64,000 nt of DNA from positions 62,001 through 126,000 of IMG/VR virus record IMGVR_UViG_3300044700_000691. One strand, 5' to 3'. Each line of letters begins with the position of its first letter. Position 1 is the first letter of the stretch. The notes below the pieces were generated by a model. The model saw only the letters and a program-made list of their open reading frames with translations, was not told the origin of the DNA and did not search any database. Shown in pieces: positions 7,766 through 61,294 of this stretch. The position numbers and the translations under genes were made by a program.

Positions 7766-8113
7766 TTATTGAGGCCAATTAGCTTCAATTGGAGAAGACC
7801 ACTCCTCAGTTGCAAGAAGAGCAAGGATTTCCGAATGAGTTAATTCTGGATAAGAGTCACTCCAAACCGAAGGCCTGCCATAGGTTCCGGCTATGGTCGT
7901 AAAAGTCGATTCTTCCATAGATTCAGGATTTAACATTGTTGTGACAATATCTTCTTCGACTACTTGAATTTCATATTTAATAAATGTTTTGGTTCCATCT
8001 AGTGAATATCGTAGGGACTCTTGATTAAATTCTAAAACCTGATCGAAATTGATAGATTCGACTAGGGCAGATGGAATTATTAACCATCTTCTGTTTTCAA
8101 ATGGGGTTTGCAT
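7766..8113 (-). CDS. Small hypothetical protein within the LamG cluster
   Basis: Intact ORF (INFDQVLE...SLRYSLDGTKTFIKY...THSEILALLATEEW) with a TAATG overlap with the upstream gene. Confidence 0.7.
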   Translation of the reverse strand: MQTPFENRRWLIIPSALVESINFDQVLEFNQESLRYSLDGTKTFIKYEIQVVEEDIVTTMLNPESMEESTFTTIAGTYGRPSVWSDSYPELTHSEILALLATEEWSSPIEANWPQ

Positions 8114-9681
8114 TATAAATTAAATCTTTTTTTGTATGCTTTAAAGTTTTGAGATACCTCAGCCGCAGTTAGGGCTCTATTATAAAATTTAACAACATCG
8201 ATTAAACCTGCCCAATTATGCCCACCACCTGAGTATCTGGAACCTATACCACGATGGGTTGTACCAGAAGATAGTGTATTAACTGAACCAGTTGAAACTG
8301 ATGCTTCTAGGTTTCCATTTAGGTAAACGCTAACGGTTGAGCCATTCCAACTATATGCTACATGGTAATATCTATTTGCTGTAATGGTAGAGGTTGTTCT
8401 GGCTCCAGTAGTATGGCCGCCGTTTCCATCAAACCAATTTGATCCATTGTGTAAGTCTATTCCAAAAAAAGTTTGACCTCCATAATTGTATAGAGCAATC
8501 CAAGTACTTGCTTCTTGAATATAAAGCTGATTATAAGAACTTGGTAAAGAAGTCGGCTTACAAATAAATTCATAGGTGGCTCGAGTAAAGCCAGATTGTA
8601 AATTTGTTGATAGTGGTATATAGTCATTTGTTCCGTCAAAGGTAAGGGCACCCGCTGAATCAAATGAAACGTTTGCTACATCAAGTATGGCAGATCCAGC
8701 AACAGTAAGCAAAGATTGGGTTGAGCTTCTAGTTCCTGCAACAAATGGCGTTGGATGAGTATTTTTTTCAACCTGAATATTTGCTAAATCGTATTTGTCG
8801 AGTGCGCCTGGCCAAAAATATGAAATTACATTTTCATTAATTGGGGTAAATTGAAAAGACTGTCGTGTCCACACTCCAAGCGGGCCATGTGTATAACCGT
8901 GACCCCAACTCGTTGGGCTAACACTGCCATAATTATAATTTTGCATCGAACCATATGCATTAGCGGTTTGCTTGTTTAGTGCCCTTGTCCAAAATGAATA
9001 GGTATGAACCTGTCCAGGAACAACGACTGCATCTGGTCCATATGACATACCGTCTGCGCTCTCTGGACGGTGTGCATGTAATCGCATGCAATCAGTTTTT
9101 TGAGAAGGATAAAGATCAAATCCTCCAACTATAATTTCTTTTACTAATCCTGAGTTGGGTAGATGTGGAGGACCCCACCACTTAGTCGGAAACCCGCTAG
9201 AATTTACTGAAACCCGCTGATCTAACCAAAATGAATCATGTACTTTGTGTCCTCTTGTTGCAGGATTAATATAACCTTGATCCCCGCCTTGTGAGCCATT
9301 ATATTCATGTAAGCTAAATTGAGTGTTTGAAATTTTCTTAGCAAAGTAATTAACGCCAGCTGTTACCCCACCCCCTGTTGTTTGAGGAGTAATAACATCA
9401 AACGAATAAATTCCATGGGAACCAGCCGTTGTAATAATATTACCAGAAACGCTTGATATAGCTGGAATATCCCAATGTACTGCACAGCCATTATTTCCAC
9501 AATACTTATTTGTATTATAGGTGGCCCAACCGTTACCAAAAGTTGGATAACTGTTTACTTGAGGAGAGGGTATAGTATTTACAGCAGGCTCGCCCTTATA
9601 ACTATTAAAAAAATCTGCAACATCAAACGCAAATATTAATCCAGTTGAAATTTGTCCATTATATCCTTTACGACTTGGCAT
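8113..9681 (-). CDS. LamG/concanavalin A-like virion protein with inserted domains
   Basis: GLIFAFD..SYKGEP; QVEKNTHPTPFVAGTRS; FDGTNDY; YHVAYSWNGSTVSVYLNG; KFYNRALTAAEVSQNF. Confidence 0.85.
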   Translation of the reverse strand: MPSRKGYNGQISTGLIFAFDVADFFNSYKGEPAVNTIPSPQVNSYPTFGNGWATYNTNKYCGNNGCAVHWDIPAISSVSGNIITTAGSHGIYSFDVITPQTTGGGVTAGVNYFAKKISNTQFSLHEYNGSQGGDQGYINPATRGHKVHDSFWLDQRVSVNSSGFPTKWWGPPHLPNSGLVKEIIVGGFDLYPSQKTDCMRLHAHRPESADGMSYGPDAVVVPGQVHTYSFWTRALNKQTANAYGSMQNYNYGSVSPTSWGHGYTHGPLGVWTRQSFQFTPINENVISYFWPGALDKYDLANIQVEKNTHPTPFVAGTRSSTQSLLTVAGSAILDVANVSFDSAGALTFDGTNDYIPLSTNLQSGFTRATYEFICKPTSLPSSYNQLYIQEASTWIALYNYGGQTFFGIDLHNGSNWFDGNGGHTTGARTTSTITANRYYHVAYSWNGSTVSVYLNGNLEASVSTGSVNTLSSGTTHRGIGSRYSGGGHNWAGLIDVVKFYNRALTAAEVSQNFKAYKKRFNL

Positions 9682-9694
9682 ATCTTAAATTATT

Positions 9695-10915
9695 TTAACA
9701 GAGGTAGCATCCTCTATTTTCATATCTGATTCGGGTTCTGTTATAAATTTCTAATATCTCAGGTTGAGCTAGGACTCGATTATATGCCAAAGCCATTGGA
9801 ATTTCTCCAAGATATTTAGAGTGGTATTCGCCTCCTATCATTGGCTCAGATCCTAAGTAGGTTCCGCCATAAAATCCGGTATTTACACTGGCAACTTGCG
9901 AGCCGTTTAAATATAGTTTAAGTATACCATCGGTCGATCGTGTACAGGCTAGCATATTCCAACCAGTTGGCGTGCCGCCTCCACCTAGAAGATATTCACT
10001 AGTTCCATTATTGTTTGCAACCCAAGCCGCAATTCCACCATGATAATAACTCATTAACTTAAGGCCAGCTCTATAATCAGGCGATGTGCAAATTAAAGTT
10101 CTATGTGGAGCACCCGTATCGCCATACCACTCAAACCATGCAACTAGAGTTTGATTTTGTGATAAATTTGCGGCAGAAATACCGCTTACCGTTAACCAAT
10201 TATTTGTGCCGTCTAAATAGATTGTGCCATCGCTAAGATAGCCGGCTCTAGTTAAATCAATTTGACCTGTGCCAGTTACATCAAGTAAACCGCCGGTGGT
10301 GCTTCTTGATCCAAGTACAAGCGGCGTTGAAAATCCTTTTTGTTCAAGCTGAAAACCAAAATATGCGAGTTTTTCGCCAACAAAGTCGCCAGTATAGCTG
10401 CTCATATAGAGGCCATTTTCATTAGCTTGGGTTGTTACAGTAGCCGACAGTCTAATCCACTTATGTCTGGGCCAATTTAGGTAATTAGTAGATCCATTAT
10501 AGGCAAATGAGCCAAGCGAATTATTATTAACTGCAGTTCTAACATAAGGCGCAGATGCAAGGGTTGTTCCAGTAAAATAAAAATAAATTGAAAAACTATA
10601 TATTGTACTTGGGCTTACTGGAACAATTGAACTGCCTATATGCTGACTCCCAACTGCAGTTACGGTTGAACTAAAAACTTTAAGACCAGATGTATCGACA
10701 TTTGCAATTACGGGTTTAGCAATTGATGTGTCATTATCATTAAATGTGGTTGATCCACTGTTAGTCCACCAATTTGAGTTGGAATTTAGTGAAGGATTTC
10801 CCGCATACGCTAAATTTGTAGTAGGCGCCCCTAAATATGACGTATTTTTGTCATTTGTATCAAACGCAAAAATTAAGCCGCTTTCGTTATAATCTAATCC
10901 GCTTTTAATTGACAT
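9695..10915 (-). CDS. LamG/concanavalin A-like virion protein with an inserted CBM-like domain
   Basis: GLIFAFD..SYLGAPTTN; QLEQKGFSTPLVLGSRS; LDGTNNW; LYLNG; AYNRVLAQPEI. Confidence 0.85.
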   Translation of the reverse strand: MSIKSGLDYNESGLIFAFDTNDKNTSYLGAPTTNLAYAGNPSLNSNSNWWTNSGSTTFNDNDTSIAKPVIANVDTSGLKVFSSTVTAVGSQHIGSSIVPVSPSTIYSFSIYFYFTGTTLASAPYVRTAVNNNSLGSFAYNGSTNYLNWPRHKWIRLSATVTTQANENGLYMSSYTGDFVGEKLAYFGFQLEQKGFSTPLVLGSRSTTGGLLDVTGTGQIDLTRAGYLSDGTIYLDGTNNWLTVSGISAANLSQNQTLVAWFEWYGDTGAPHRTLICTSPDYRAGLKLMSYYHGGIAAWVANNNGTSEYLLGGGGTPTGWNMLACTRSTDGILKLYLNGSQVASVNTGFYGGTYLGSEPMIGGEYHSKYLGEIPMALAYNRVLAQPEILEIYNRTRIRYENRGCYLC

Positions 10916-10917
10916 AA

Positions 10918-11040
10918 TTATTGCTGTGTGGCAGAGTTTGCCTCGGCTTCAGAATAGTAAATACCAATTAAGTCGGCACCCTCTAGAACAAACCAGCATG
11001 GAGTGCCAGCTAAGTCAATTCCGGTTTCTACGTATTTCAT
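10918..11040 (-). CDS. Small hypothetical protein, 40 aa (MKYVETGIDLAGTPCWFVLEGADLIGIYYSEAEANSATQQ)
   Basis: ATGA overlap with the upstream gene and TAA 2 nt before the next ATG; it fills the gap exactly. Confidence 0.7.
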   Translation of the reverse strand: MKYVETGIDLAGTPCWFVLEGADLIGIYYSEAEANSATQQ

Positions 11041-11714
11041 CGACCGTGTCTATTTTTTTGTGCATTATAGTTTGCTAAAACTTCTTCGCCAGATAAGGCG
11101 CTATTATAAACCCTTATCGCAGAGATTCCGCCAGCAAATTGACGACCGTCGCCTTCCCATCCAACATTACAGTCACTATAGATATAACCAGCCGCTGCAT
11201 AAGTTGCAACAGTATTAACTAGAGTGCCGTTTACATATTGTTTTAGTGTATTGGTTCCTCTATCCCAAACCGACGCCAGGTGGTGCCAAGCTTGTCTGGC
11301 CATGGTTACGCCAGGTTCGTGATATCCTTGGTTTGTGGTTGCATACCAATAATTACTTAATTGTTGATTTCCTTTATTCCAACTTAGATAAGCATAGCCT
11401 TGAAAAATACAACCGCGATCTCCTCCACTTACTTCAGACGCAGCTGGATAAATCCAAGCCTCTAGTGTAAGTGAATTCATGTATTGGGCTGTACCAAATC
11501 TAATTACAAACCTGTCGCCGACCCCATCTAGATTAAAACACGTTGCACCGCCTAGTGTAGTATTAACTGGGCTGCCATAAATATCTGCATAGAATCCATT
11601 ACCGCTAATATCAGACCAAATTGCGCCAGATCCAGGGTAACTATTAACGTCACCTGCATCCAGGGCTAGGAGTAAATTTCGGGTAGTTATTCTTGGATTA
11701 TAGTGTAGTGCCAT
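11037..11714 (-). CDS. LamG/concanavalin A-like virion protein (short form)
   Basis: LLLALDAGDVNSYPGSGAIWSDISGNG...TLEAWIYP...WHHLASVWD..QYVNG...IRVYNSALSGEEV. Confidence 0.85.
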   Translation of the reverse strand: MALHYNPRITTRNLLLALDAGDVNSYPGSGAIWSDISGNGFYADIYGSPVNTTLGGATCFNLDGVGDRFVIRFGTAQYMNSLTLEAWIYPAASEVSGGDRGCIFQGYAYLSWNKGNQQLSNYWYATTNQGYHEPGVTMARQAWHHLASVWDRGTNTLKQYVNGTLVNTVATYAAAGYIYSDCNVGWEGDGRQFAGGISAIRVYNSALSGEEVLANYNAQKNRHGR

Positions 11715-11717
11715 AGA

Positions 11718-11969
11718 TTAAGGTTGAGCCGCTGCATTTTTTGCTTTATTGTGAAATAAGAGAGCATAGTACATAAAGGTATGAGTATAGATTCCATACT
11801 CTGGGGCACCAATATGAATTGGTCCGTTTTCACGTTCACAAATAAAGAATATAGTTGAGTTTACATCAACTATTCCAACGATTTTAAATCTGGAAACTGC
11901 TCCAATGTTGTAGTATGTGTCTAATTCATAGACAGCATCTTCGATTTGATATGTTTGTAAGTTTTGCAT
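11718..11969 (-). CDS. Hypothetical protein (83 aa)
   Basis: TAATG overlap with the upstream gene; fills the gap in the operon. Confidence 0.65.
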   Translation of the reverse strand: MQNLQTYQIEDAVYELDTYYNIGAVSRFKIVGIVDVNSTIFFICERENGPIHIGAPEYGIYTHTFMYYALLFHNKAKNAAAQP

Positions 11970-13285
11970 TATTCGAATCCTCCCATTTTTCTATTATGTG
12001 ATACAACTTCACCGATAACATAGGTGTGAGCTTGGTCAACTTCAATTTGAACTACTTCCATTTCTCCAATTGATTCAATCGATTCAATTTCGGCAAGTCC
12101 ATTTACTGTTTGTACTTTAGCACCTATCCATAGTTCGGATAGTGCAATAAAGCCCATACTTTCGGTTAAAAATTTGTGATTACTTGATACTTTAAGTTCT
12201 TGGCCTCCAATTACAGTACGGCTAACCATATTAGTTCCAGGATTAACTGCGGTCACCCTGTATGATCCCCATTCACCAGTTGTTTCGTGTTTAGTGTAAA
12301 CATAATCTCCAATAGTAAGCTCTCCAGCGGTCACCCAAGTATTAGGATTAATTAAGATTGGCATATCTGGAGTAGGGCAGAATGTTCCACATATTTGATT
12401 AAGATCTGCATATGCTCCATATAATTGAGATATTCCACAGAAAACAAGTTCTCCATAACAACACGAATACCCAGAGACAGGATTATCTAAACAGTCTCGA
12501 CCTTCCCAATATCCACTACCATCTGAAAAGAAATTATAACAGTTATTAGCAGGAGGTTGATATCCACATGTTGTAGAATTGCTTTCAGCCAGAGAAGAAT
12601 AGGTTCCATTACAACCATTTGAATAAGTATAGTAAAGATCAAATCCTGAGCAATAACTGCTTAGATAAGTTCCATTTGCTGGCGAACAGCAACAGCCGCC
12701 GCATGCAGTGGTACAACCTTGACTTACATCATAGGTTCCGCAGCTACCGTTTGCATATCGATAATAAAGAGTACACCCTGAACAAAATTGACTTAAGTAG
12801 GTGCCATTTGCTGGGCAGCCTGCGCTGGTCGTAATCGTTAAAATATTTGAATAACCCGAATAACCACCGGTTGAGGTACAGGTTATTCGCACTCTTATTA
12901 AATAGGTCATGCTTGAGGCAAGTCCACTAATAGTTCTGGTTGCTGAGCAGCCTCCAGAATCTGTGCTCCAGGTCGAACCGTCGTTTGCACTAGATTCAAC
13001 GTGCATAGTTGTACAATTTGAATAGCTAACATTAATTGTAATTGAACTTGATGTAACTGAATTACTGGAAATACTAGGAGCATTGCAGCAAGCAAACGTG
13101 TGATTATAGTTACGCCACTCAGATATTGAAGCTGGGTTAGCTGAAGAAGGAAAGCTTGGTGAGCACGAATTAATCGCAGCATAACTACCATTCTCAGCTG
13201 AGTCTAGACTAATATTTGTACCAGCTGCACGGCCAAGCTCTGTATTGATTTGGCTCATTGAAACCGTAGTCGCGCCTAGTGCCAT
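11969..13285 (-). CDS. Cys-rich tail-fibre-associated protein with an FN3-like domain and a C-terminal Hint domain (11993-12379)
   Basis: N-terminal SMSQINTELG...ISEW motif. FN3-like ISGLASSMTYLIRVR. Two PANGTYLS..CSG..LYY.Y.NG..GTY repeats. Hint block A (CPTPDMPIL), block B (SSNHKF) and blocks F/G (VVQIEVDQAHTY..VVSHN). Confidence 0.8.
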   Translation of the reverse strand: MALGATTVSMSQINTELGRAAGTNISLDSAENGSYAAINSCSPSFPSSANPASISEWRNYNHTFACCNAPSISSNSVTSSSITINVSYSNCTTMHVESSANDGSTWSTDSGGCSATRTISGLASSMTYLIRVRITCTSTGGYSGYSNILTITTSAGCPANGTYLSQFCSGCTLYYRYANGSCGTYDVSQGCTTACGGCCCSPANGTYLSSYCSGFDLYYTYSNGCNGTYSSLAESNSTTCGYQPPANNCYNFFSDGSGYWEGRDCLDNPVSGYSCCYGELVFCGISQLYGAYADLNQICGTFCPTPDMPILINPNTWVTAGELTIGDYVYTKHETTGEWGSYRVTAVNPGTNMVSRTVIGGQELKVSSNHKFLTESMGFIALSELWIGAKVQTVNGLAEIESIESIGEMEVVQIEVDQAHTYVIGEVVSHNRKMGGFE

Positions 13286-13286
13286 A

Positions 13287-16200
13287 TTATTCGCCTCTTA
13301 ATTTTTTAACCTCTAATTTAAGATCTTCTATTTGTGCCTGTTGCTCTTTAATAGCCTCAATTAAGAGTGCAGTCATGTTACCATAAGAAACATTATACAT
13401 TCCAGCGTTATCTTGATTTACAACTTCTGGAACAACTTCTAGCGTTTCTTGTGCAATAACTCCAATCTTAGTTCGAGTATCATCAGAATCAGTTCGGTTA
13501 TAAGAAACTCCACGTAGTGCTAAGGTTTTTGCTAGAGCATTTTCAATTGTATGTATATTGGTTTTAACTCTGGCATCTGAGTATGCTGTTACATCTCCAG
13601 CCATTGTAAGATTACCAGACATATCCATTTGCAATCTATTAGTAGATGCTGACCAACCACCAATGCGCATTACATTATCTGAGTCTAAACCAAAGTTTAC
13701 AGCATAATATCCCCCTCTATGAAAAGACATTATTGCACCACCACCATTATTTGAATATGCTTGTAAAGGAGCTGAATCTGTACTTGTATTTCTATTAGAT
13801 ACAAAATAATTTTGTCCTGTCCAACTATGACCATTACCTAATGAATTAGATATGCTGTTAGTATTACCTACTGTTTGAGATGCAATATTGTATGCTGTAA
13901 TAAATTCATAAAATGTACCATATGATGTAGATGTAGAAGCTTGAACACTTATTGCCATTCTTGGTGTACCATTTCTTAATGTATGTAAAGCACACATTTG
14001 AAGTACATCACCACCAGAATAACCATTAATCCAAAGTGTATCTGACCATACAGACCAAGCTCCTGTCATAGCAGCTTTTAATCCAATACCATTATTAAAA
14101 TATACTTGAGGATTAGTTTGTTGACCTCCAGCATAAGCTGTAGCTAAATATGTTGAATAACCACCAATATTTGTTTGGTCTCCAGTATTTGTACCAGAAG
14201 AAGAACCTGAATGGGAACCGCTAAAGTTTGATGAGGCAAAGGTTCCAGCTATCTGCATATTACCAGATGTAGCGTTTATTGCAGCTATTGGAGCATAAGA
14301 TATTCTACCCCAAGTAAATCCTCTACCTGCATCCCCATCATTCATTTGTGTTTTGATAGAATAATCATTAACCGGTCCATACTGATACAATGAAGATGAA
14401 CCCATACTAATTTTATAAGAATCCGATGACCAAAGCTTTAAACCATTACCTTCGCCTGGTGTCACATTATAGAAGGAGTTCTGATTACTTGCGTTTGGCG
14501 CGGAACCTGCGCTATTTGCATATCTTACACCAAGATCAGAAGGTTCAATCCAACCACTTCCTGAATATGCTCCATTATTATAAACGTATCTAGAGTAATC
14601 AACATAATTTCGACCTTCTCCTCTTGAAATAGCTACACGGGAACTAGCGTCAAACAGAGCCCCGGCATATAAATTATTAGCAGCTCTAACGTGTGAATCT
14701 CCATTGCCGACTGAAAATAATTCAGTTGCCATAGTAGAATCATCATAGAATCTAGTTCCACCATATCCAGTATTTGCTCCGATCTTAATTCCAGTGTGAT
14801 ATCCTATATGTAGATCTGGGTAAGGGTGACTCCAGCCTCCTCCACCTTGATAAATTGCATATGAGTGATTACTTGTGTTACCAGAATCTCCACCGACTCC
14901 AGTAAATCTTAGAACACGCAGAGTTCGATCTTCGTTATCTCTAAAATATGAAAAATTATTAATTTCAGTCTCAGTATAGTATCTGTCATCATGTGTATGT
15001 GAAGAAGCGGCCCATCCTCCGTAATTTCCTAAGTCATTTGAGAATTGAGAAAGAGCAGTTGGTCTACCTGTAACGCCGGTCCATGCAACATTGGTTGCAG
15101 TTGCAGCGTTTCCTGAAATATTTGTTTGATCACCAGTGTTTGTACCGCTTAAATTAGCTGCAAACCAGTTACCACTATTATCAGCATAAGCTCCCCAACT
15201 GTTAGATGAAGTTAAGAAACCGATTCTTCCACTATTACAGTGTATTCTTCTTGTAGTTTCATCTGTATCAGTCATGTAGATATCTGATGATGTACTATTA
15301 CCCACGGTTAGCGATCCATAAACTTGAACTCCTCCAGTATCTACTCTAACTCTCCAGCTATCTGTACTATCTAATAGTCCAAACCCTGCAGCATCTCCAT
15401 ACACTGATCCTTTAAGAGTACTTTCATGGTTAAGTCTAAATTGTAAGTGCACAACTGATCCGCCATTACCTGTAATACCCCATATAGAGCCTCCTCTTGA
15501 GTAAAAGTGATTTCCATTTGCCTGATTATAGAGACCAGTATTGTTTGAATTATTTCGGAACCAGCTGTTATTGTATAAGTCAGTAAAGGTTGGAGATGAT
15601 GAAGTTAGGAGAGCTTGGTTTAGATAACTAGATAACCAGGTTCCTCTGGTTCCAAAGTAAATATCGCCATTTACTAAGAAACTGCCATTTGTTCGTATAC
15701 CTGCATTAGGCGCATCTCCATAGAAATAGTAGGTTTCATTACCTACATAAATATTTGAGTCAAATCTAGCAGAACCTCCGCTATAAACCATTTTATTTCC
15801 GCGTACTCTTAGATAGGTACCGTCAGTCATAAACCAGCCGCCGCCCCAGCCAAAGGATAGGTCTTCATCTTTAAGGTAAGTTGAGGTACCTCGACCAAAC
15901 ACAATACCATCGTTATTGCCTAATAATTGAATTGAGCCATTTACATAAAGTCGGTTATTGGTTGGAACTCCAGTTGCACCAGAGTTATCAGAGGCAGTAT
16001 AAGAAAAATCAGTTGTTCCAAATCCAACCCGGCCGTCTTGGCCTACATAGATTGCATTTGTTCCAAACTTACCAATTTGTACAACATTGTTTGCAAATAC
16101 TTCAAGTACAGGTAAACCTGCAAGGGTATTTACGCTATATAGAGAATCTGAAAGATCATCAACTACTGTAAATAGTCGACCGTTAATTCCATTTACAGCA

Positions 16201-19200
16201 AAAGCTTCAGCTCCTTGGCTTGGGCTATTAATCGTTAAGGCACCGGTCATAGTGTCTCCGCTTACATTAACATATAAATTATCTGCAGTTGCTTGTGATA
16301 ATCCGCTTGAAGACAAAGTTACAGAGTTTCCGCCTGAAATACTTAGGGTATTTCCACTAAGGCTTAAGGTTTGACCATCAGTATTTGTGTCTGTATCAAT
16401 ATCATTAAATGCAGCAGTTAAGGTTGAACCATCACCTTGAGTTAAGGTTAAGGTTTTTGTACCAGTGCCGCTAAATGAAATTGCAGTAGGTCTCTTATCA
16501 TATGCAGTATTCCAGTTTGTTGAATTTCCTCCTGTTGCTGTGATAACTCCTACCGTCCAGATACCATAACCAATAGCTGTTTGGGTACTGCCATTAGCCA
16601 TAAATAGTGCTTGGTGTCCTAATCCAGATTTAGATTGTCCTCCTACATTTGTATGTGTCCATGCAATACCATAAAGAGATCCGGGAGAAGTACCATCGGC
16701 AGATACTTTGTAAGCATCTCCCATTGCAAATACACCCTGGTATCGATCGGAAGCATACAGGCCAACTATACCATTACCATAGTTATCGTCTATATAAAAA
16801 TTACCATTAGCTCGAGTTGCTCTTGCTGCAGTACCCGATACATTAATACTCCAAGTACCACTATTATAAACATAGGCAGTACCGTCTGAGTGTTTTAGTC
16901 TACCTCCATATATGTAAACGGTTCCGCCGCCATTACCAAAATACATATCACCACTTGAGTAATGATTAAAATACATTTGATAAACATTGCCTGCTCCACC
17001 TCTTGTGTCTATATGTAAATTACCGTTAGAAGTTCTAATACGAGCGTATGTTGTATCAGTCGACCAACCGCCAAGATGTAAAGCTGCCGCAGCACTATAT
17101 GAGCTAGCTCCGTATAGAATTAATGCAGTAGCATCACCATTTACAATTGTATTTGTAATATTTGTATAAACTCCATTTGTAACAGAACCGGCATTACCTG
17201 AAATATTAGTAACACTAGTTAAATATCCACTGTTATTAGTAAACTGAGAAATATTCATTGAACTTAGAGCGCCGGCTGTAGCTACAGTTTGTGAACCAAT
17301 GTTTGCTGAAGTTATTACAGCACTACCGTTCGCATACAATGTTCCGCCAATAGCAGCATAAGTATTTCCAGAAGTATCTATTTTAAATCTTTCTGTACCC
17401 CATCCATCTGAAGTTGAGTTATTATTTCTATAACCCATGTTTTGAGTAACACGAAAGTTATCATCATTAGAACAATATCCTACATTCCATCTAGTATCAT
17501 TACCTCCATATGAAAATTGAATAGATGGTCTATCAGAATCGGCAGTATTTATTCTATATCTAGCTACAATACCCCAAGAGTGATTACCTCTATCAGATTC
17601 AAAACTGTATGGAATAAAGTCTCCAGTTGCTGATTGTAAAGTTATCCATTTTCCAGATTGTCCATGGCTCGCTGTACCAACGTTACTTCTATGAAACTCA
17701 GAACCATCACTCCAATATTCATGACCCGCGCCTCCAGAAGGGGCTGCCGCTATATAGGTGTGACCATATATCCAGTTATCAGCGCCCGCTGTTGAAATAC
17801 CATTAGGAAAGAATGCAGAATCGGCAGTGTTCCAAGGATTTCCAGGACTTATGTAACCGCCTTTTGCATAGATAACATCTGTGCTAGGATTTACATAAAC
17901 GTGGGTTGTCCCATAAACATTATTACCAGAACCCCATAATAATTGATATGTTGAGTTTGAATTATTATCATAATTTATAGTTACTTGTGAAGATGTTCCT
18001 GCAATATTTGCATAGGCAACTCGTACACCAGCTGGAGTACCTGGAGAAACTTTAAGTTCCCAGTAACTACCACCATCATAGTTCATGTACATATAGTATG
18101 GAGCAGCTCCGCCGTAAACATAACTTCCATCACTAGCATATAATCGTGTAGAGTTTGTTGCGTAAGTAACAGATTGAGAACCAATATTACCGGTTGTGAT
18201 TAATCCTAAGTTTGATATAAAGTTTGCTGGAGTTTGATAACGCATATAGTCATCATCAGAACAATATATTTTATTTATACCACTTGAAAATGCTCCAGAA
18301 GTTGTGTTAATCCATCCCGCTTGAATATATCCATTGGCATCTGTTCTTACAATTTTGTTTACTTCATTGTTTCTACCACCGTGTACTGCTAACCCACCTG
18401 CTGTTGTAGCATTGCTTACAGACTGAGAGCCAATATTACCGGTTGTGATTGCGTCAGTAATGCCATAACCTGAAATTGTAGTTGGTTTACTGGTTAATGA
18501 AGCAAATGTATGCGAATGTGATATTGCTGCATATCTACCATCTAACAAAGATTGTTTCTTAGTTCGGAGACCATCTATACGTGATGAATTGACTGCAGCT
18601 AATCCTAATGGAGCAGGCGCAGGGACATCATATTGATTTGTACCTGACCAAGCATCATCATAAGATAATGTACTTGAACTATATAAAATGTCAGGTGAAC
18701 CGCTTTGATAAAAACCATTAATTGGTTGATCAGAAAATAGGTGATAAACTGCGCCACCTCCACGTAACATAAAGACATACCCCATTGAGTGGCTATATAT
18801 GAACATATCGGCGCATACGTTTGTATAAGATTCGTTAAATACTCGTAAACGATCTGCATATTCAGCACCGCCCCATCCACCAAAATTACCTTCCCAATCT
18901 AAGAGAAGACCTCCATGGTGAACACCTGTTCCAATTGGATCCCAAGGAGCAGGTTCACCATATCCGCGCTTAATAATAATTCTACGCCAAACATCCTGAT
19001 CTCCTCCCCAAAACTGAACAGCATAAAATCTGTCAGGGTCTCCATCAACTGTAATGTCAACAGAATATGGTAAGGTTGTAACGCCTAACATATTAGATAG
19101 GCCGTTAACTTTAGTCCCAGTTAATTGAGATCCACCTAGATATACACTGCTAAATGAAGGGGCACTGTCTGTTCTAACATTTTGATTTAGATAAGTAGAT

Positions 19201-20009
19201 AACCAATTTCCTCTAGTTCCCAAGTAAATATCTCCATTTGCTAAGAAATTACCATTGGTTCTGATACCAGAGTTTCCGGTATCGCCATAGAGGTAATACG
19301 AACCCTGTGAACCAACTGCTGCATTATTATAGCCAGGATAATATGGATGAGTTGAAAGTAGGTCTCCAGTTAGGGTTCCGCCTGAAAGTAATAAGTATCT
19401 ACCATCGTGGTTATGCGAAGGAAGACTTGTTAAATAACCCGCACTTGCATGGTTACCCCATCCGTATGCAGTGTTCCAATTTGAGGCATTATATCCAGAG
19501 GCAGAAATGGTACCAGTAATAGTTAAATTACCACCGTCCATGTCTAAAATTACGCGGCTTGTTCCTCCACCAACAAATTCAAAATCATTGTTATCACCAT
19601 TCCATCTTAAACCCCAGGCATTAGCAGCGGTTGCGTGCGAAGGATAATAATCTCCAGAGATACCCCAAATATCAAAGTTACCATCGCCTACATCTAAACC
19701 AACTATACCGCCAGGAAATCGTGGACGATTTGCTACCGCGGATGGAAATGTTATTTTTCCAGTTATTGTATCGCCAGCCTTTGAAACTTTACCTGCAAGT
19801 GAGCTCGTAAGTGTTGATGAAAAACTTGCATCATTTCCTAAAGCTGCTGCCAACTCATTAAGAGTATCTAGCGCGCCAGGGGCACCATTAATTAAGTTAT
19901 TAATTTGTGTTGTAACATAAGACGTTGTCGCAATGCTGTGAGCCGCTAGGTTTCCAGCATGGATCGCGCTGTGTCCAGCAATTGTAGTTCCTGATATTAA
20001 TTGTGCCAT
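13287..20009 (-). CDS. Long tail fibre (2240 aa) with a C-terminal peptidase S74 intramolecular chaperone (13287-13580)
   Basis: Gly/Asn/Ser/Thr-rich mosaic with ALDTLNELAAALGND repeat. C-terminus AY|SDARVKTNI...LRGVSY...GVIAQE...LLIEAIKEQQAQI. Confidence 0.9.
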   Translation of the reverse strand: MAQLISGTTIAGHSAIHAGNLAAHSIATTSYVTTQINNLINGAPGALDTLNELAAALGNDASFSSTLTSSLAGKVSKAGDTITGKITFPSAVANRPRFPGGIVGLDVGDGNFDIWGISGDYYPSHATAANAWGLRWNGDNNDFEFVGGGTSRVILDMDGGNLTITGTISASGYNASNWNTAYGWGNHASAGYLTSLPSHNHDGRYLLLSGGTLTGDLLSTHPYYPGYNNAAVGSQGSYYLYGDTGNSGIRTNGNFLANGDIYLGTRGNWLSTYLNQNVRTDSAPSFSSVYLGGSQLTGTKVNGLSNMLGVTTLPYSVDITVDGDPDRFYAVQFWGGDQDVWRRIIIKRGYGEPAPWDPIGTGVHHGGLLLDWEGNFGGWGGAEYADRLRVFNESYTNVCADMFIYSHSMGYVFMLRGGGAVYHLFSDQPINGFYQSGSPDILYSSSTLSYDDAWSGTNQYDVPAPAPLGLAAVNSSRIDGLRTKKQSLLDGRYAAISHSHTFASLTSKPTTISGYGITDAITTGNIGSQSVSNATTAGGLAVHGGRNNEVNKIVRTDANGYIQAGWINTTSGAFSSGINKIYCSDDDYMRYQTPANFISNLGLITTGNIGSQSVTYATNSTRLYASDGSYVYGGAAPYYMYMNYDGGSYWELKVSPGTPAGVRVAYANIAGTSSQVTINYDNNSNSTYQLLWGSGNNVYGTTHVYVNPSTDVIYAKGGYISPGNPWNTADSAFFPNGISTAGADNWIYGHTYIAAAPSGGAGHEYWSDGSEFHRSNVGTASHGQSGKWITLQSATGDFIPYSFESDRGNHSWGIVARYRINTADSDRPSIQFSYGGNDTRWNVGYCSNDDNFRVTQNMGYRNNNSTSDGWGTERFKIDTSGNTYAAIGGTLYANGSAVITSANIGSQTVATAGALSSMNISQFTNNSGYLTSVTNISGNAGSVTNGVYTNITNTIVNGDATALILYGASSYSAAAALHLGGWSTDTTYARIRTSNGNLHIDTRGGAGNVYQMYFNHYSSGDMYFGNGGGTVYIYGGRLKHSDGTAYVYNSGTWSINVSGTAARATRANGNFYIDDNYGNGIVGLYASDRYQGVFAMGDAYKVSADGTSPGSLYGIAWTHTNVGGQSKSGLGHQALFMANGSTQTAIGYGIWTVGVITATGGNSTNWNTAYDKRPTAISFSGTGTKTLTLTQGDGSTLTAAFNDIDTDTNTDGQTLSLSGNTLSISGGNSVTLSSSGLSQATADNLYVNVSGDTMTGALTINSPSQGAEAFAVNGINGRLFTVVDDLSDSLYSVNTLAGLPVLEVFANNVVQIGKFGTNAIYVGQDGRVGFGTTDFSYTASDNSGATGVPTNNRLYVNGSIQLLGNNDGIVFGRGTSTYLKDEDLSFGWGGGWFMTDGTYLRVRGNKMVYSGGSARFDSNIYVGNETYYFYGDAPNAGIRTNGSFLVNGDIYFGTRGTWLSSYLNQALLTSSSPTFTDLYNNSWFRNNSNNTGLYNQANGNHFYSRGGSIWGITGNGGSVVHLQFRLNHESTLKGSVYGDAAGFGLLDSTDSWRVRVDTGGVQVYGSLTVGNSTSSDIYMTDTDETTRRIHCNSGRIGFLTSSNSWGAYADNSGNWFAANLSGTNTGDQTNISGNAATATNVAWTGVTGRPTALSQFSNDLGNYGGWAASSHTHDDRYYTETEINNFSYFRDNEDRTLRVLRFTGVGGDSGNTSNHSYAIYQGGGGWSHPYPDLHIGYHTGIKIGANTGYGGTRFYDDSTMATELFSVGNGDSHVRAANNLYAGALFDASSRVAISRGEGRNYVDYSRYVYNNGAYSGSGWIEPSDLGVRYANSAGSAPNASNQNSFYNVTPGEGNGLKLWSSDSYKISMGSSSLYQYGPVNDYSIKTQMNDGDAGRGFTWGRISYAPIAAINATSGNMQIAGTFASSNFSGSHSGSSSGTNTGDQTNIGGYSTYLATAYAGGQQTNPQVYFNNGIGLKAAMTGAWSVWSDTLWINGYSGGDVLQMCALHTLRNGTPRMAISVQASTSTSYGTFYEFITAYNIASQTVGNTNSISNSLGNGHSWTGQNYFVSNRNTSTDSAPLQAYSNNGGGAIMSFHRGGYYAVNFGLDSDNVMRIGGWSASTNRLQMDMSGNLTMAGDVTAYSDARVKTNIHTIENALAKTLALRGVSYNRTDSDDTRTKIGVIAQETLEVVPEVVNQDNAGMYNVSYGNMTALLIEAIKEQQAQIEDLKLEVKKLRGE
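15012..15119 (-). repeat. 36-codon module shared with 22355-22462 (identical protein, 16 synonymous differences)
   Basis: Codon-by-codon comparison of ISGNAATATNVAWTGVTGRPTALSQFSNDLGNYGGW in both fibre genes. Confidence 0.9.
17218..17261. repeat. 44-bp repeat shared with 20952-20995 (1 mismatch), between the two fibre genes
   Basis: gttaaatatccactgttattagtaaactg(a/t)gaaatattcattga. Confidence 0.9.
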
Positions 20010-20014
20010 ATTAG

Positions 20015-23000
20015 TTATCTATTTTCAAGATTTTCAATTCTCTCGGTTAATTTTTTAATTATTTCATGCTGTTCTTGAATTGTCTTAATCAAGATTGGCG
20101 CGATACGAGTATAGTTAATACCATCAACTTGACCTTCACTATCATATTTAACTAATTCAGGATAGATTTCAGCAACCTCTTCCGCAATTAAACCAATTTC
20201 AGTTTCGCCAGTTCCACCAATTTTAACATAGTGAACTGGTCTTAGTTGTAAGACTTTATCTAGAGCTGGAGTTAGGGACTCAACTTGAGTTTTATATCTA
20301 ATAGATGATAATTCTATTAATCGATTTGCGATTGTTAGGGTTCCAGTATTACTTACTTCAAGTAAACGGTCTCCATCAATTGCACCTTGCCATATAACGA
20401 AATCATCCATTGTATTTGCACCACCGCCGACTCCACCGTCTGTATTTAGCACAAAATGGTGACCTCCTCTAGATTGGTATTCTAGCCAATAATTAGAGCC
20501 TGCTGCAAAACCTTCGCTTGGATAAGCTGCTGCTCGAATTATATTATAAAATCCGCCAGATCCGTCTCTAAATGCAAGTTCGCCGATGATATTTAAGTTT
20601 CCACTAAGGGTACCTCCACTTAGTGATAAGTAGTAGCTATCTGTAACCTGACTCCTAAAGTGACCAGGCGTAGATTTTCTTAAATAGTTATCACTTGTAT
20701 TTTGAGTCCAAATTTGACCAATAGTTGGGTTTTCTGAGTTACCAGCAGAAGCATTAAAATATGATCCTAAGACATAGTTTGAATAGATATTTCCGCTAGA
20801 GTCTCTTCGTACAATTGTATTTACGTTTGCTGCAGTATCTGAAGTATATCCATCCAATAAATCTGCGTCTAAACCAGAACCAGCTCCATCATTTCCTGCA
20901 TGCCAAGGCGTATATCCAAGAGCAGTAGTAACGTTTCCGCTTGTTATACTTGTTAAATATCCACTGTTATTAGTAAACTGTGAAATATTCATTGAGGTTA
21001 AAGCTCCGGCAGTGGTTGCAGTAGCAGCATTGCCGCTAATATTAGTTTGATCTCCTGTATTTGTACCAGAAGATGACCCACTAAAGTTAGTTGCACTTAT
21101 GGTGCCAGTAACAGAAAGGTTACCCCCACTAGTTAAAGATAATCTTCTAGCAGCGTTCCATTGAATAACAAAATCTGCACCAGCCGCCCCACCAGATCTA
21201 GTCATACCAAGTCTCCAGTGGTCGTTGTACCATTGATATTCATGACCAGAGACTAGGTCATTTGTGGTGTACGAAGATGGAATGTATACAGCAACCTCTC
21301 TTCCTTCACTACCGGTTATTGTTATTGGAGTTGACGTGGTTGCTCCTCTACCTGTTACACTCGCTAGAGTATCGGTTTCTGTATATCCAGTTATGTAACC
21401 TTGAGAAGTTACCCATGATTGAGTTGCTAATAGGTTTCCAGCTGCATACGGTACATATTTAAAATATGCAGTATTTGCAGTAGTTATTTCAAGCGCAACT
21501 ACAGTTGGATCATAGATATCACCATATCCAAGTTTAAAGCTATTTGTGTTAGCATTATTAGTCATTCCCATCGACCACATTGGTGCTCCTGTGTAATCCC
21601 AAGCAGTTCCTTGATATGTGCCCATGGCGGTCATAAACATTAGTGTTGCCTGATTCCCTGTTCCTTGTCGGCTAATGAATACTCTGGCAGTTCCTGTTTT
21701 AGCGCTAACATATAATTCTGGATTAGATCCAGCCAATTGAATTTGTGCTGGGTTAGCACTAATTGGAGAAATGTACAGATTTCCTGTCATTTCATCTCCA
21801 CCTATATTAACATATAGCCCGTCTGCTGTTGCTTGAGAAATTCCAGTTGATGCAAGCGTTACAGAGTTACCTCCTGAAATACTTAAGGTATTTCCAGAAA
21901 GACTAAGCGTTTGTGCATCAGTATTTGTATCAGTATCAATATCTGTCCAAGTTGCAGTTACTGTGCCTCCATCTCTTTGTGTAAGAGTTAGGGTTTTTGA
22001 AGTTGTTCCACTAACTGCAGCTGAAGTTATTGTATCATTATATGCAGAATTCCAATTCGCTGAAGTACCATGACTTGGCGTAGAAATTCCACTTGCATTA
22101 ATTACAATAGGCGCAGAAAAGGGTCCAATATTAACAGTATTATTAGCAAAGGCTTCGATTACAGGAAGACCTGCTACCGTATTTACTGAAAATAGAGAAT
22201 TTGAAAGATCATCACTTACTGTGAACAGTCTGCCATTAACTCCGTTTACTGCAAATAATTCCTGGCCGCTGGTTGAACCAGTAATTACTAAAGGCCCAGT
22301 CATTGTGTCGCCAGTTACATTAACATATAGCGGATTAGCTGCTGCTTGTGTTAACCAGCCGCCATAGTTTCCTAAGTCATTAGAGAATTGAGAAAGAGCA
22401 GTAGGTCTGCCTGTTACTCCAGTCCATGCTACATTCGTAGCGGTAGCAGCGTTTCCAGAAATACCAATTGCCCAAGTGCCGTTTTCCCAAACGTAATTGT
22501 AACCTGAACCAGTTTTTAAATTACCATCAGTTGCTAAATAAAATTTAAGAGCTCCAGATTGAGTAAACTTAATTTCTTCGTTTGAGTCATCTTGTGTACC
22601 AATTTCAAGGTAAGATCCTCCAGCCTGGTTGCCGGTTGATATAAATTTAATAAATGCGGCATCTGTATTTAATCCCCAAGTAAGTCCTAATCCAGATGTT
22701 GCACCAAAGGCAAGATTACCAGTCATTGTATCACCACTTTTAGAAACTTTGTTTCCTATTGATGTGGTAATTGTGGTAGCAAAATTAGCATCATTACCTA
22801 ATGCGGTAGCTAATTCGTTAAGTGTGTCTAGTGTACTAGGAGCCGATGCAACTAAGTTAGAAACAGCTGTGTTTACATAGGTTTGAGTTGCATATCCAGA
22901 AAGAGCGGAGGTTGTAATATAAGCTGGGCCATTGGTTAATTGGTTTAGGTTAGTTAAGTTACCAGCTGTCCATACTTGTGAGTTATCCCAATATAGCCTT

Positions 23001-35451: not shown

Positions 35452-36492
35452 TTATTGGAAATATTGGAACATGGTATTGTAACCACCGCCAGAAGATTCA
35501 GAGTATTGACCAGAACCTCCACTGCTGTAACTGCTGTAACTGTTGCCGCCGCTGTATGTATAAGTTTGGCTCGTAACAGGTGCAGTATAGCTAAACACTA
35601 AGTCAATCTCAGTAATAGTTGTGTTGCCTACACTAATTGCATCTGCAAGTTCTTGAGTAAATGGTTGACTCGTTGAAGTTGTACTAACTGGTAAAGGCGA
35701 CTTCTTTTGCCAATATGAAAACGAATATCCAGAAGGAAGAGATGAAGATATTGATACACTTACATTTTGACCACTTGTAAATTGTCTAATAATTTGATTA
35801 GAGTTACCCGATTGCGGGCTACCCGAAGCTCCGTTTAGCGTAATTGTAATATATTGAGATAGTGTACTCGATGAAATTGACGACAAGTTTGTTTTAAGCA
35901 GATTTACTTTAAAAATACCTCCATTATATGTAGCAGCTGATGCAGATGCTCCAACTGCTGGGGCATAGTTTGCAGAAATAATTCTCCAAGTATAGGTCTG
36001 AGGAGTAGCTAAGGCACGTGATGTACGTTGACACTGAACTACCACTGAATTAATTGGTAAATTTGCAACGGTTGTAATTGCCGCGCTAGTTGAAGGCAGG
36101 GCCGATAGTGTAACTACAGTTGTTTCGGTTCCTCCACTTGTAAATTTAACAGCAAGGGTCGAACTTTTTTGGTTAGTCAAAACATATGTTCTGTGTAGAA
36201 CGCTTGCAGTAGGCGATGGTAAAGTAATACCAGTAATTGCACTAGTTGATCCAACATATACTCCATAATGACCGTTAGTTAACTCTAATAGGCCTGATTT
36301 TTCACTGCCGAAGTATGCAACATTCGGTAAGCTTAGCGATCCATTAAGCATGAAGTGCGAAGTTGGATTAGAAAGAACTGCATCCATGGTTGCATCTTCA
36401 TAATAGTTAAATTTTCCAGCCGCCATTCTGCCATCTCTGGTAACGGTAAACTTAACTGCTTTAAGTATATTTGATAAACTTAATGTTTTCAT
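35452..36492 (-). CDS. Hypothetical Ser/Thr-rich virion protein
   Basis: Last gene of a long late operon; beta-rich composition; Gly/Ser/Tyr-rich tail. Confidence 0.6.
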   Translation of the reverse strand: MKTLSLSNILKAVKFTVTRDGRMAAGKFNYYEDATMDAVLSNPTSHFMLNGSLSLPNVAYFGSEKSGLLELTNGHYGVYVGSTSAITGITLPSPTASVLHRTYVLTNQKSSTLAVKFTSGGTETTVVTLSALPSTSAAITTVANLPINSVVVQCQRTSRALATPQTYTWRIISANYAPAVGASASAATYNGGIFKVNLLKTNLSSISSSTLSQYITITLNGASGSPQSGNSNQIIRQFTSGQNVSVSISSSLPSGYSFSYWQKKSPLPVSTTSTSQPFTQELADAISVGNTTITEIDLVFSYTAPVTSQTYTYSGGNSYSSYSSGGSGQYSESSGGGYNTMFQYFQ

Positions 36493-59701: not shown

Positions 59702-61294
59702 ATGTCAAAAACAATAATTTTTGATGCTGATGCAAGAAACCGATTAAAAGTTGGTGTTGATACATTAGCCAATTCAGTAAAAGTAACAATGGGTCCAGGT
59801 GGACGTAATGTCGTTATCGCAAGAGATGGCGGTTTAGCTGTTACAAAGGACGGAGTTTCCGTTGCTAGAGAAGTAGTATTATCTGATCATATTGCTGATG
59901 TTGGTGCGCAAATGGTAAAACAGGTTGCACACAAAGTTGCGCAGTTAGCCGGCGATGGTACAACCACGGCAACAGTATTAACTCAAGAAATTTTCAATAG
60001 AGGATTAAAAGCAGTTGCGACAGGAGCCAACCCAATCGAATTAAAAAGAGGTATGGATGCTGCTTTAACTGAAATAGTTGCAGCGCTAAGCCAATCATCA
60101 ATTCCAGTTAAAGATCTTACTCACATTCATCAAGTTGCAACAATTTCTGCAAATAACGATGAATCTATGGGTGCTTTAATTACTCAATGTATGGAGGCAG
60201 TTGGATTTGATGGAATTATTACGGTTGAGCAAAGTAAATCAGCTGAAACCTATGTTGATATAGTAGAAGGAATGCAATTTAAATCAGGCTACCTATCACC
60301 ATATTTTATTAATTCTAACGAAAAACCTCAAGTTGAATTTGAAAACGCCCTAATCTTATTAGTAGATGGTAAAGTTTCTGTGCTAAATGATATTGTACAG
60401 TTCTTAGAATATTCAAATCAAAAGGGTCGTCCACTATTAGTTATTTCTGAAAGTGTAGACGGCGATGCTTTAAATACAATGGTTCTTAATAAATTAAGAG
60501 GAACAATTAAAGCAGCAGCGGTTAGAGCTCCAGGCTTTGGAGAATTACGTAAAGAAAACCTAGACGATATTGCAATCCTAACTGGCGCCAAAACCGTCTC
60601 TGAACGAGAGGGTTATTCATTAGCTGAAACCATTGCTTCTGAAGTATTAGGTTCAGCCACTAAAGTTATTGTTACAGCAGACTCTACTACAATTATTGGT
60701 GGAGAAGGCCTGCAAGACTCGATTAAAGAGCGTATTTCAGATATTAATGCTCAAATTGAAAACAGCACAAACGAATCAGCAACCCTAATTCTTAAAGAGC
60801 GTATTGCTAGAATAGATGGTGGAGTTGCTATTATTAAAGTAGGAGCCCACTCTGAAATTGAAATGCGTGAGAAAATTGACCGCATTGACGATGCAATAGG
60901 TGCAACCAGAGCGGCAGTTGAAGAAGGTATTGTTGTAGGCGGTGGAGTTGCACTTTGTAAAATTGCTGAAGAATTAACACCAACTATTGCTCAAACCCAA
61001 AACTTTGAACATAGACTAGGTCGTACAATCTTATTAGAATCATGTCTAGCACCATTTAGAGTTATTTTAACTAATGCAGGAGAGTCACCAGATGCAATTC
61101 TTTCAGAAATGAAGAATAGAGGTCAGGAATATAATGTAAAAACCAGAGAATATTGTAATTTTATTGACTCAGGTATTATTGATCCAGCTAAAGTAGCCAG
61201 AGTAGCTATTGAAAATGCAGTTTCGATTGCATCTATGATGCTTACAACTGAGGTCTTAATGGTACAAGACCCACCTACAGAAACTAAGGCGTAA
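59702..61294 (+). CDS. groEL: Phage-encoded chaperonin GroEL (Cpn60)
   Basis: VKVTMGPGGRNV, TKDGVSVA, AGDGTTTATVL, EGMQFKSGYLSPYF, APGFGE.RK, GGVAIIKVGA, GIIDPAKV. Confidence 0.97.
   Translation: MSKTIIFDADARNRLKVGVDTLANSVKVTMGPGGRNVVIARDGGLAVTKDGVSVAREVVLSDHIADVGAQMVKQVAHKVAQLAGDGTTTATVLTQEIFNRGLKAVATGANPIELKRGMDAALTEIVAALSQSSIPVKDLTHIHQVATISANNDESMGALITQCMEAVGFDGIITVEQSKSAETYVDIVEGMQFKSGYLSPYFINSNEKPQVEFENALILLVDGKVSVLNDIVQFLEYSNQKGRPLLVISESVDGDALNTMVLNKLRGTIKAAAVRAPGFGELRKENLDDIAILTGAKTVSEREGYSLAETIASEVLGSATKVIVTADSTTIIGGEGLQDSIKERISDINAQIENSTNESATLILKERIARIDGGVAIIKVGAHSEIEMREKIDRIDDAIGATRAAVEEGIVVGGGVALCKIAEELTPTIAQTQNFEHRLGRTILLESCLAPFRVILTNAGESPDAILSEMKNRGQEYNVKTREYCNFIDSGIIDPAKVARVAIENAVSIASMMLTTEVLMVQDPPTETKA

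Follow-up and report, generated by a model that had tools for sequence, protein, structure and literature searches.

A type-A-BIL-like Hint domain in the C-terminal tail of a tail-fibre-module protein of an uncultured freshwater jumbo phage, with predicted self-removal

A 438-amino-acid (aa) protein encoded on the minus strand at positions 11969-13285 of a 64,000-nucleotide stretch of IMG/VR virus record IMGVR_UViG_3300044700_000691 (positions 62,001 to 126,000 of the record; the whole stretch is called the window hereafter) contains a Hint domain that ends seven residues before its C-terminus. We interpret this domain as a Hint that resembles type A bacterial intein-like (BIL) domains, is inserted in the flexible tail of a Cys-rich, FN3-containing tail-fibre-module protein, and probably removes itself after translation; we assign this reading, which is argued from sequence, a probability of roughly 0.7. 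The open reading frame (ORF) is real, and the coordinates given for it in a preliminary description of the same DNA are exact. The precursor and the parts of it on which the interpretation depends are as follows.

11969-13285, minus strand: whole gene, encoding a 438-aa precursor with N-extein (residues 1-302), Hint (303-431) and tail (432-438); stop codon at 11969-11971
11993-12379, minus strand: Hint (BIL-type) autoprocessing domain, residues 303-431, 129 aa, without endonuclease, recognised by sequence, profile and fold searches
12377-12379, minus strand: Cys303, Hint residue 1, the block A nucleophile and start of a CPTP motif; invariant in 78/78 family segments
12164-12175, minus strand: block B S-S-N-H, residues 371-374; His374 is invariant
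12020-12031, minus strand: block F A-H-T-Y, residues 419-422; nearly invariant
11993-11998, minus strand: terminal His430-Asn431, block G; invariant in the family
11972-11992, minus strand: C-flank tail RKMGGFE, residues 432-438; the Lys433 codon (11987-11989) is the conserved +2 Lys

The identity of residues 303-431 as a Hint domain is secure because single-sequence search, family profile, structural model and fold comparison agree. With the single sequence as query, the best phmmer match in the PDB is the Clostridium thermocellum BIL domain 2LWY (E 3.3e-5), and a profile of 78 family segments retrieves the gp41-1 intein (1.3e-13), 2LWY (2.4e-11) and Tetrahymena BIL2 (2e-10). An AlphaFold2 (AF2) model built with 75 homologues has predicted local distance difference test (pLDDT) scores of 84-93 over the domain, and Foldseek matches it to BIL2, 2LWY and the gp41-1 and NpuDnaB mini-inteins (E ~1e-8, target template modelling (TM) scores 0.80-0.88); the Hint fold, on which the preliminary description had staked its proposal, is thus predicted at these scores. 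PT-HINT is the best Pfam family and is matched by 57 of the 78 segments, with the metagenomic relatives P0134, P0155 and P0141 above its cut-off at 45.3, 43.7 and 35.9 bits (P-numbers denote metagenomic proteins and L-numbers related viral loci that were compared). NCBIfam returns weak intein matches only. Across the family alignment of 78 segments, Cys1, the block B His and the terminal His-Asn are invariant, and the CPxP start and the block F AHTY motif are nearly so.

The domain has what defines the HINT superfamily, namely the Hint fold with block A Cys1 and the block B T/SxxH histidine. It also has what defines type A BILs: a C-terminal His-Asn, a +1 residue other than Cys, Ser or Thr, and a place in a variable region of a non-conserved protein without an endonuclease. 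On these sequence features it is best classed as a type-A-BIL-like Hint. The 129-aa length, Cys1, the SSNH block and the terminal HN all lie where they had first been placed. The +1 residue is Arg, as reported, and the RKMGGFE tail holds no Cys, Ser or Thr; the endonuclease is likewise absent, and 129 aa leaves no space for one. Among 43 Hint-bearing orthologues the +1 residue is R in 29, G in 6, K in 4, V in 2, A in 1 and T in 1. The single Thr belongs to P0027 (tail TKEGIY), which might be capable of canonical splicing.

The Hint is an insertion in a short C-terminal tail and not an appendage. A protein database search found about 45 full-length orthologues of the 438-aa protein (67-92% identity) and about 40 syntenic orthologues of 300-316 aa that lack the Hint and stop 2-12 residues past the last conserved Cys. 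Hint-less tails read, for example, GKKGGGGIV, GKPGFEQIK, IGGGLEQIN and SGGGFEQV, and the corresponding Hint-bearing flanks read C-GTF|Hint|RKPGGIV, C-GTGQ|Hint|RKIEQEF and C-GGDPG|Hint|KKLEEIM. When joined, the Hint flanks measure 10 aa at the median and the Hint-less tails 8 aa, and a loose G-[FLI]-[EIV] motif occurs in both. A Hint-less allele is present in the DNA of locus L003 as a complete gene that ends in a stop codon and is followed by the same 84-aa ORF. The initial view of the domain as a terminal appendage that ends the protein is not upheld, since Hint-less orthologues share the short tail.

Gain and loss of the domain are recorded in a maximum-likelihood tree of 83 N-exteins, which falls into two clades. 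Clade A holds 41 Hint-bearing sequences and two nested Hint-less ones, among them P0045, the allele that is complete in L003; the other clade holds 38 Hint-less sequences together with P0048 and P0049, whose Hint occupies the same site. The tree cannot be explained with fewer than four gains or losses. The Hint of P0048 is only 27.6% identical to that of the window protein although the exteins are 60% identical, whereas P0041 from the first clade has 73.6% identity in the Hint and 64.3% in the extein. This contrast indicates two Hint lineages that were acquired independently at one site. The second lineage also occurs in the P0268-P0273 family, whose N-terminus differs, whose last Cys subdomain is homologous and whose tails are RKIGFE or RKPGFE; in P0282 and P0283, with tail KIPCP; and in the P0274 family (>650 proteins), where the Hint lies between a 167-aa N-terminal part and an FN3 domain. 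In L013, a related phage, a different fibre-module protein (P0091, 458 aa, L013:5041-6417) has a Hint nine residues before its end that is 51% identical to the window Hint and of the same lineage, and the window encodes an orthologue of this protein in which the Hint is absent.

35452-36492, minus strand: Hint-less P0091 orthologue, 346 aa, 71% identity

The C-terminal tails of P0091 and this orthologue differ. Hint-less orthologues in the same slot, the nested loss and the Hint-less P0091 orthologue show that the Hint is dispensable for the core function of its host protein, which makes both a folding aid and an obligatory attachment device less likely. The cleavable folding aid of the preliminary description fares poorly for this reason: 40 syntenic orthologues work without the Hint, and at least one nested loss is verified.

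Divergence within the gene was estimated by the Nei-Gojobori method over seven orthologous genes. The Hint has a ratio of non-synonymous to synonymous divergence (dN/dS) of ~0.16 and the lowest non-synonymous divergence of the gene (pN 0.092 vs 0.15-0.34 in the extein regions). It is therefore under purifying selection and is not a relic. The tail past the Lys is variable, with dN/dS ~1.4 over very few sites. Compared with L007:1527-2840, the window gene has a synonymous divergence of 0.53 across the N-terminal module, 0.06 across the FN3 part and 0 across the Hint, and this mosaic indicates recombination inside the gene.

The domain belongs to a very large metagenomic family and is not a singular device. 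An exhaustive profile-free protein search gave 1225 matches at E<1e-3, and >90 different cluster representatives, 130-1784 aa long, were matched through the Hint part alone. A Lys after the terminal Asn is the clearest signature of this family. Among 75 non-orthologous members, Lys is at +1 in 38 and at +2 in 33, and 70 have one or the other; it is at +2 in all 43 Hint-bearing orthologues, and in the P0274 family at +1 in 120/120 proteins among the matches listed and in 52/52 viral loci examined. Only 3 of 40 Hint-less orthologue tails have a Lys within their first four residues, so the Lys travels with the Hint and, judged from its conservation, behaves like a functional component of it. In 35 of 71 representatives, no more than 15 residues follow the last Hint. 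N-flanks in the family are often poly-Gly, and in most other members poly-Gly takes the place of the C-G-T-F of the window protein.

The family contexts that were examined all belong to tail or fibre modules on large viral contigs. The suggested survey for similar proteins beside S74 fibres elsewhere has a positive answer in P0134 (L017:6001-11355), which directly follows an S74 fibre gene. In L022, a 238-kb myovirus contig, the position of P0340 and of the P0274-family gene (L022:8001-9272; family loci also L026-L078) is flanked by LamG proteins on one side and by sheath and tube genes on the other; the P0274-family product consists of the N-terminal part (167 aa), the Hint, 'THN|KGG' and FN3, and the Hint is present in every one of the listed proteins and loci counted above. 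Some proteins carry tandem Hints, two or three per protein (P0161, P0166, P0184, P0194 in L020 and L021, P0134, P0140 and P0141), separated by 4-7 residues (HN|KLDS|C, HN|LVGKGGG|C) or by basic linkers (HN|KRRRP...) in a polyprotein-like arrangement. No family member was found among the 50,697 phage genomes of INPHARED by megablast and tblastn with the gene, and other family Hints retrieved only distant canonical inteins there, for example in terminases; a pattern scan with one family Hint found none in 185k bacterial and archaeal species genomes. The earlier statement that no characterised role of this kind is known in phage adsorption accords with the lack of a characterised phage example among those 50,697 genomes.

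The invariant residues suggest how the precursor is most likely processed. An N-S acyl shift at Phe302-Cys303, to which Cys1 and the block B His point, would give a thioester; Asn431 would then cyclise and the Asn431-Arg432 bond would be cut, as the terminal His-Asn suggests. The freed alpha-amine of Arg432 might attack the thioester, as proposed for type A BILs; alternatively, the epsilon-amine of Lys433 might do so, as in Tetrahymena BIL2, or the thioester might be hydrolysed by water. The mature product would be residues 1-302, either free or joined to the seven-residue tail, and near to what Hint-less orthologues encode. In type A BILs, which have a terminal His-Asn and no +1 nucleophile, an N-terminal thioester forms and the C-terminus is cut by Asn cyclisation (PMC4031507; PMC7664689). 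Cleavage products predominate, and the flanks can be ligated when the freed alpha-amine attacks the thioester (PMC4031507; PMC7664689; Amitai 2003, Dassa 2004 and Aranko 2013, as cited in those two papers). Tetrahymena BIL2 uses the epsilon-amine of a Lys to resolve its thioester, and an isopeptide forms (PMC8616854). The last extein Cys of the window protein, Cys299, lies four residues ahead of Cys303 in a C-G-T-F-C motif (12377-12391, minus strand), and a Cys299-Cys303 disulfide could act as a redox trap that delays the acyl shift.

Contigs from RNA libraries cover both Hint junctions without a joint, with the reservation that DNA may be present in such libraries; any removal is therefore post-translational, and removal at the RNA level is rejected for want of such joints. 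Freshwater metatranscriptome contigs carry the gene without differences, and one of them spans 11600-13442. As a nuclease-free element, the Hint would persist and move among the C-terminal tails of fibre-module proteins by recombination, and it would be tolerated there since the host protein stays almost whole even when cleavage is not followed by ligation. The bias to C-terminal tails may be understood in the same way, because an element that mostly cleaves would survive only at sites that can afford to lose the C-flank.

A Lys at +1, or at +2 after a hydrophobic or small residue, would fit a long flexible side chain that reaches the active site better than it would fit a role for the +1 alpha-amine. 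A bolder version of the proposal takes 'C...HN-(x)K' as a self-contained splicing cassette, in which the epsilon-amine of the flanking Lys would attack the Cys1 thioester before Asn cyclisation, the Hint would be released and an isopeptide would join the N-extein to the C-flank. Such a Lys-dependent splicing class, hitherto unrecognised, would occur widely among the tail-module proteins of large aquatic myoviruses and would be fixed in some of these, such as the P0274 family. We consider this version improbable.

Several observations weigh against self-removal of a tolerated insertion. On its own, the window sequence scores 18.8-22.2 bits against PT-HINT (cut-off 27.7) and 16.1 bits against Intein_splicing (cut-off 35.8), so that the profile check proposed earlier came out divided: the family profile finds BIL and intein structures, and the single sequence stays below the Pfam cut-offs. 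The model leaves the tail disordered, at a pLDDT of 42. Synonymous divergence is lower in the Hint than elsewhere (pS 0.39 vs 0.52-0.63), which could fit recombinational spread or extra constraint alike. The part given to Lys is read from its conservation, and self-processing is a prediction for any member of the family. The Hint is also kept in 41 of 43 clade-A sequences and in every P0274-family member seen, and such long retention looks more like that of a domesticated, useful module than of a tolerated parasite. This last point leads to the view that timed self-cleavage is needed for assembly, for example with the C-terminus masked until docking, in parallel to the S74 chaperone encoded upstream. 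The retention with purifying selection, fixation in the P0274 family and the independent gain of two Hint lineages at one site would all agree with such a maturation module. It is harder to reconcile with Hint-less orthologues in the same slot, one of them nested in the Hint clade, and with a P0091 orthologue in the source genome that has no Hint, and we hold it to be doubtful. A decaying, inactive relic, or a removable folding aid without chemistry of its own, would account for the sub-threshold Pfam scores and for the dispensability in orthologues; the invariance of all catalytic residues, a dN/dS of ~0.16, an amino-acid divergence lower than in any other region of the gene, and the confident model make this very unlikely.

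The preliminary description had proposed a Hedgehog-like activation, in which the Phe302 thioester would be passed to an outside nucleophile (a Lys of another virion protein, a small molecule or a group on the host surface) and the protein would be anchored covalently. The absent +1 nucleophile, the position at the extreme C-terminus in about half of the representatives (the 35/71 with tails of ≤15 aa), the recurrence in fibre modules beside S74 fibres and the ability of BIL2 to conjugate its N-flank to other proteins (PMC8616854) are in its favour. Transfer to the outside needs neither the invariant His-Asn nor the flanking Lys, however, and Hog domains do without them; 40 syntenic orthologues lack the domain, the thioester would form at folding in the cell, long before contact with the host surface, and there is no evident partner. 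The invariant His-Asn and near-universal Lys point to intramolecular resolution of the thioester, and therefore C-terminal cleavage, possibly with ligation, is favoured over covalent attachment to an outside target, which is weakened to a small probability. A Hog domain as such was rejected, as there is no sterol or adduct recognition region and the His-Asn is invariant. A canonical class 1 mini-intein, with transesterification to a +1 Cys, Ser or Thr, would explain why blocks A, B, F and G are all there and why gp41-1 is the best profile match. Canonical splicing is ruled out by the lack of a +1 nucleophile: Arg occupies this position, and only one of 43 orthologues has a Cys, Ser or Thr anywhere in the tail. 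The site is a short, variable, Gly-rich tail and not a conserved site of an essential enzyme; on the +1 Arg and the variable insertion site the candidate was rejected, and its probability is negligible. We retain, as the best account of the window gene, a type-A-BIL-like Hint that would remove itself and that its host protein does not need for its core function.

The N-extein into whose tail the Hint is inserted has a modular architecture.

13088-13285, minus strand: N-terminal conserved module, residues 1-66; low model confidence
12821-13087, minus strand: FN3-like beta-sandwich, residues 67-155; model pLDDT 83-91, with FN3 fold matches
12545-12820, minus strand: two Cys-rich repeats, residues 156-247; the repeat unit is also found in tandem in proteins of up to ~2500 aa
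12380-12544, minus strand: variable last Cys-containing subdomain, residues 248-302, and linker G-T-F; highest pN of the gene

The N-terminal module, which the preliminary description had taken for a fibre-associated motif, is common to many otherwise different metagenomic proteins, and many matches cover residues 2-90 only. The FN3-like domain proposed from the sequence is borne out by fold matches to the model; the sole PHROGs match is a weak one, of FN3 type, to phrog_4971 at residues 77-155. The Cys richness is equally real, with 24 Cys in the N-extein and Cys1 alone in the Hint. The last Cys subdomain (residues 248-302) has a homologue in the P0268-P0273 family. Matches to the N-extein in the ESM Atlas are limited to an unnamed viral cluster, and no N-extein paralogues were found in the source genome.

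The source is a 216.8-kb IMG/VR virus record with an estimated completeness of 84%, and the virus is a freshwater jumbo phage that has not been cultured. The record includes a baseplate wedge gene of T4 type with its best matches in uncultured jumbo phages and Lak phages (33-35% identity), a cluster of LamG-domain proteins, a GroEL gene and two giant S74 fibres. The Hint-bearing gene was found in sequencing runs from freshwater and lake metagenomes, and a separate 84.5-kb IMG/VR record (L006, IMGVR_UViG_3300046805_000617) holds a copy that is 100% identical. No further Hints were found in the 216.8-kb source genome besides this one. The immediate neighbours of the gene are the following.

13287-20009, minus strand: upstream 2240-aa fibre with a C-terminal Peptidase_S74 intramolecular chaperone at residues 2144-2197
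11718-11969, minus strand: downstream 83-aa ORF, present beside Hint-bearing and Hint-less alleles alike

The gene had been placed directly after a tail fibre, and the S74 domain at residues 2144-2197 of the upstream ORF confirms this. The synteny with the S74 fibre is kept in L004, L012 and L017, and the order S74 fibre, Hint-gene orthologue and small (84-aa) ORF is common to Hint-bearing and Hint-less alleles. The Hint gene's TAA stop codon and the ATG of the 83-aa ORF overlap (11966-11972), and the Hint-less L003 has a 19-nucleotide spacer there. This 83-aa ORF has no family match. A homing endonuclease was not found near the Hint gene, and the 83-aa ORF accompanies Hint-less alleles too. 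In the window as a whole, the 2240-aa fibre is adjoined by a second giant fibre of 1960 aa, and each ends in Peptidase_S74 (13287-25897, minus strand); there are also three LamG-domain proteins downstream (8113-11714, minus strand) and a phage GroEL gene (59702-61294, plus strand).

BIL-type Hints have been studied so far in bacterial secreted proteins and at one ciliate locus, and the present case extends them to phage virion structural proteins. It also reveals a large, unstudied family of hundreds to thousands of metagenomic proteins, whose signature of His-Asn followed by Lys leads to a direct mechanistic prediction. If the Lys is the nucleophile, the family would represent a new class of protein splicing and could provide a ligation tool that needs no junction Cys, Ser or Thr. 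If it is not, the case would show how a nuclease-free Hint can persist in C-terminal tails, where cleavage without ligation is harmless.

Among known systems, the type A BIL represented by Clostridium thermocellum BIL4 (2LWY) is alike in Hint fold, N-terminal Cys, block B His and C-terminal His-Asn, and also in the lack of a +1 Cys, Ser or Thr and of an endonuclease and in its location in variable regions of non-conserved proteins. Its host is a bacterial secreted protein, whereas here it is a phage tail-fibre-module protein; the domain described here further differs in its CPxP start, in a near-universal Lys at +1 or +2, in a strong bias to positions within 15 residues of the C-terminus, and in that the protein falls under the PT-HINT cut-off. 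Tetrahymena thermophila BUBL BIL2 (6Y75/6TMM) is the top Foldseek match (E 2.4e-8, TM 0.80). It is eukaryotic, is only ~17% identical to the present domain, and has ubiquitin-like flanks, Met-Gln at +1/+2 and its nucleophilic Lys inside the downstream domain. A BUBL-type BIL was rejected here, where a Cys-rich subdomain precedes the Hint, a 7-aa tail follows it and no ubiquitin-like domains occur. Pretoxin Hints of polymorphic toxins (PT-HINT, PF07591) form the best Pfam family, but the context here is that of a virion structural protein without a toxin domain; as the Hint is followed by seven residues only, a pretoxin Hint was rejected as well. Class 1 mini-inteins (gp41-1 6QAZ, NpuDnaB) share the fold and the four splicing blocks, and unlike the present domain they have a +1 Ser or Cys, occupy conserved sites of replication proteins and act by transesterification. 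The Peptidase_S74 chaperone of the neighbouring gene is a self-cleaving C-terminal fibre domain that resembles the Hint by analogy only; its fold and chemistry are unrelated (a Ser-Lys dyad protease), and it is required for trimer folding, whereas orthologues can dispense with the Hint. Relative to these systems, the novelty lies in the setting in viral structural proteins, in the Lys signature, in the bias to C-terminal positions, and in how large and diverse the family is.

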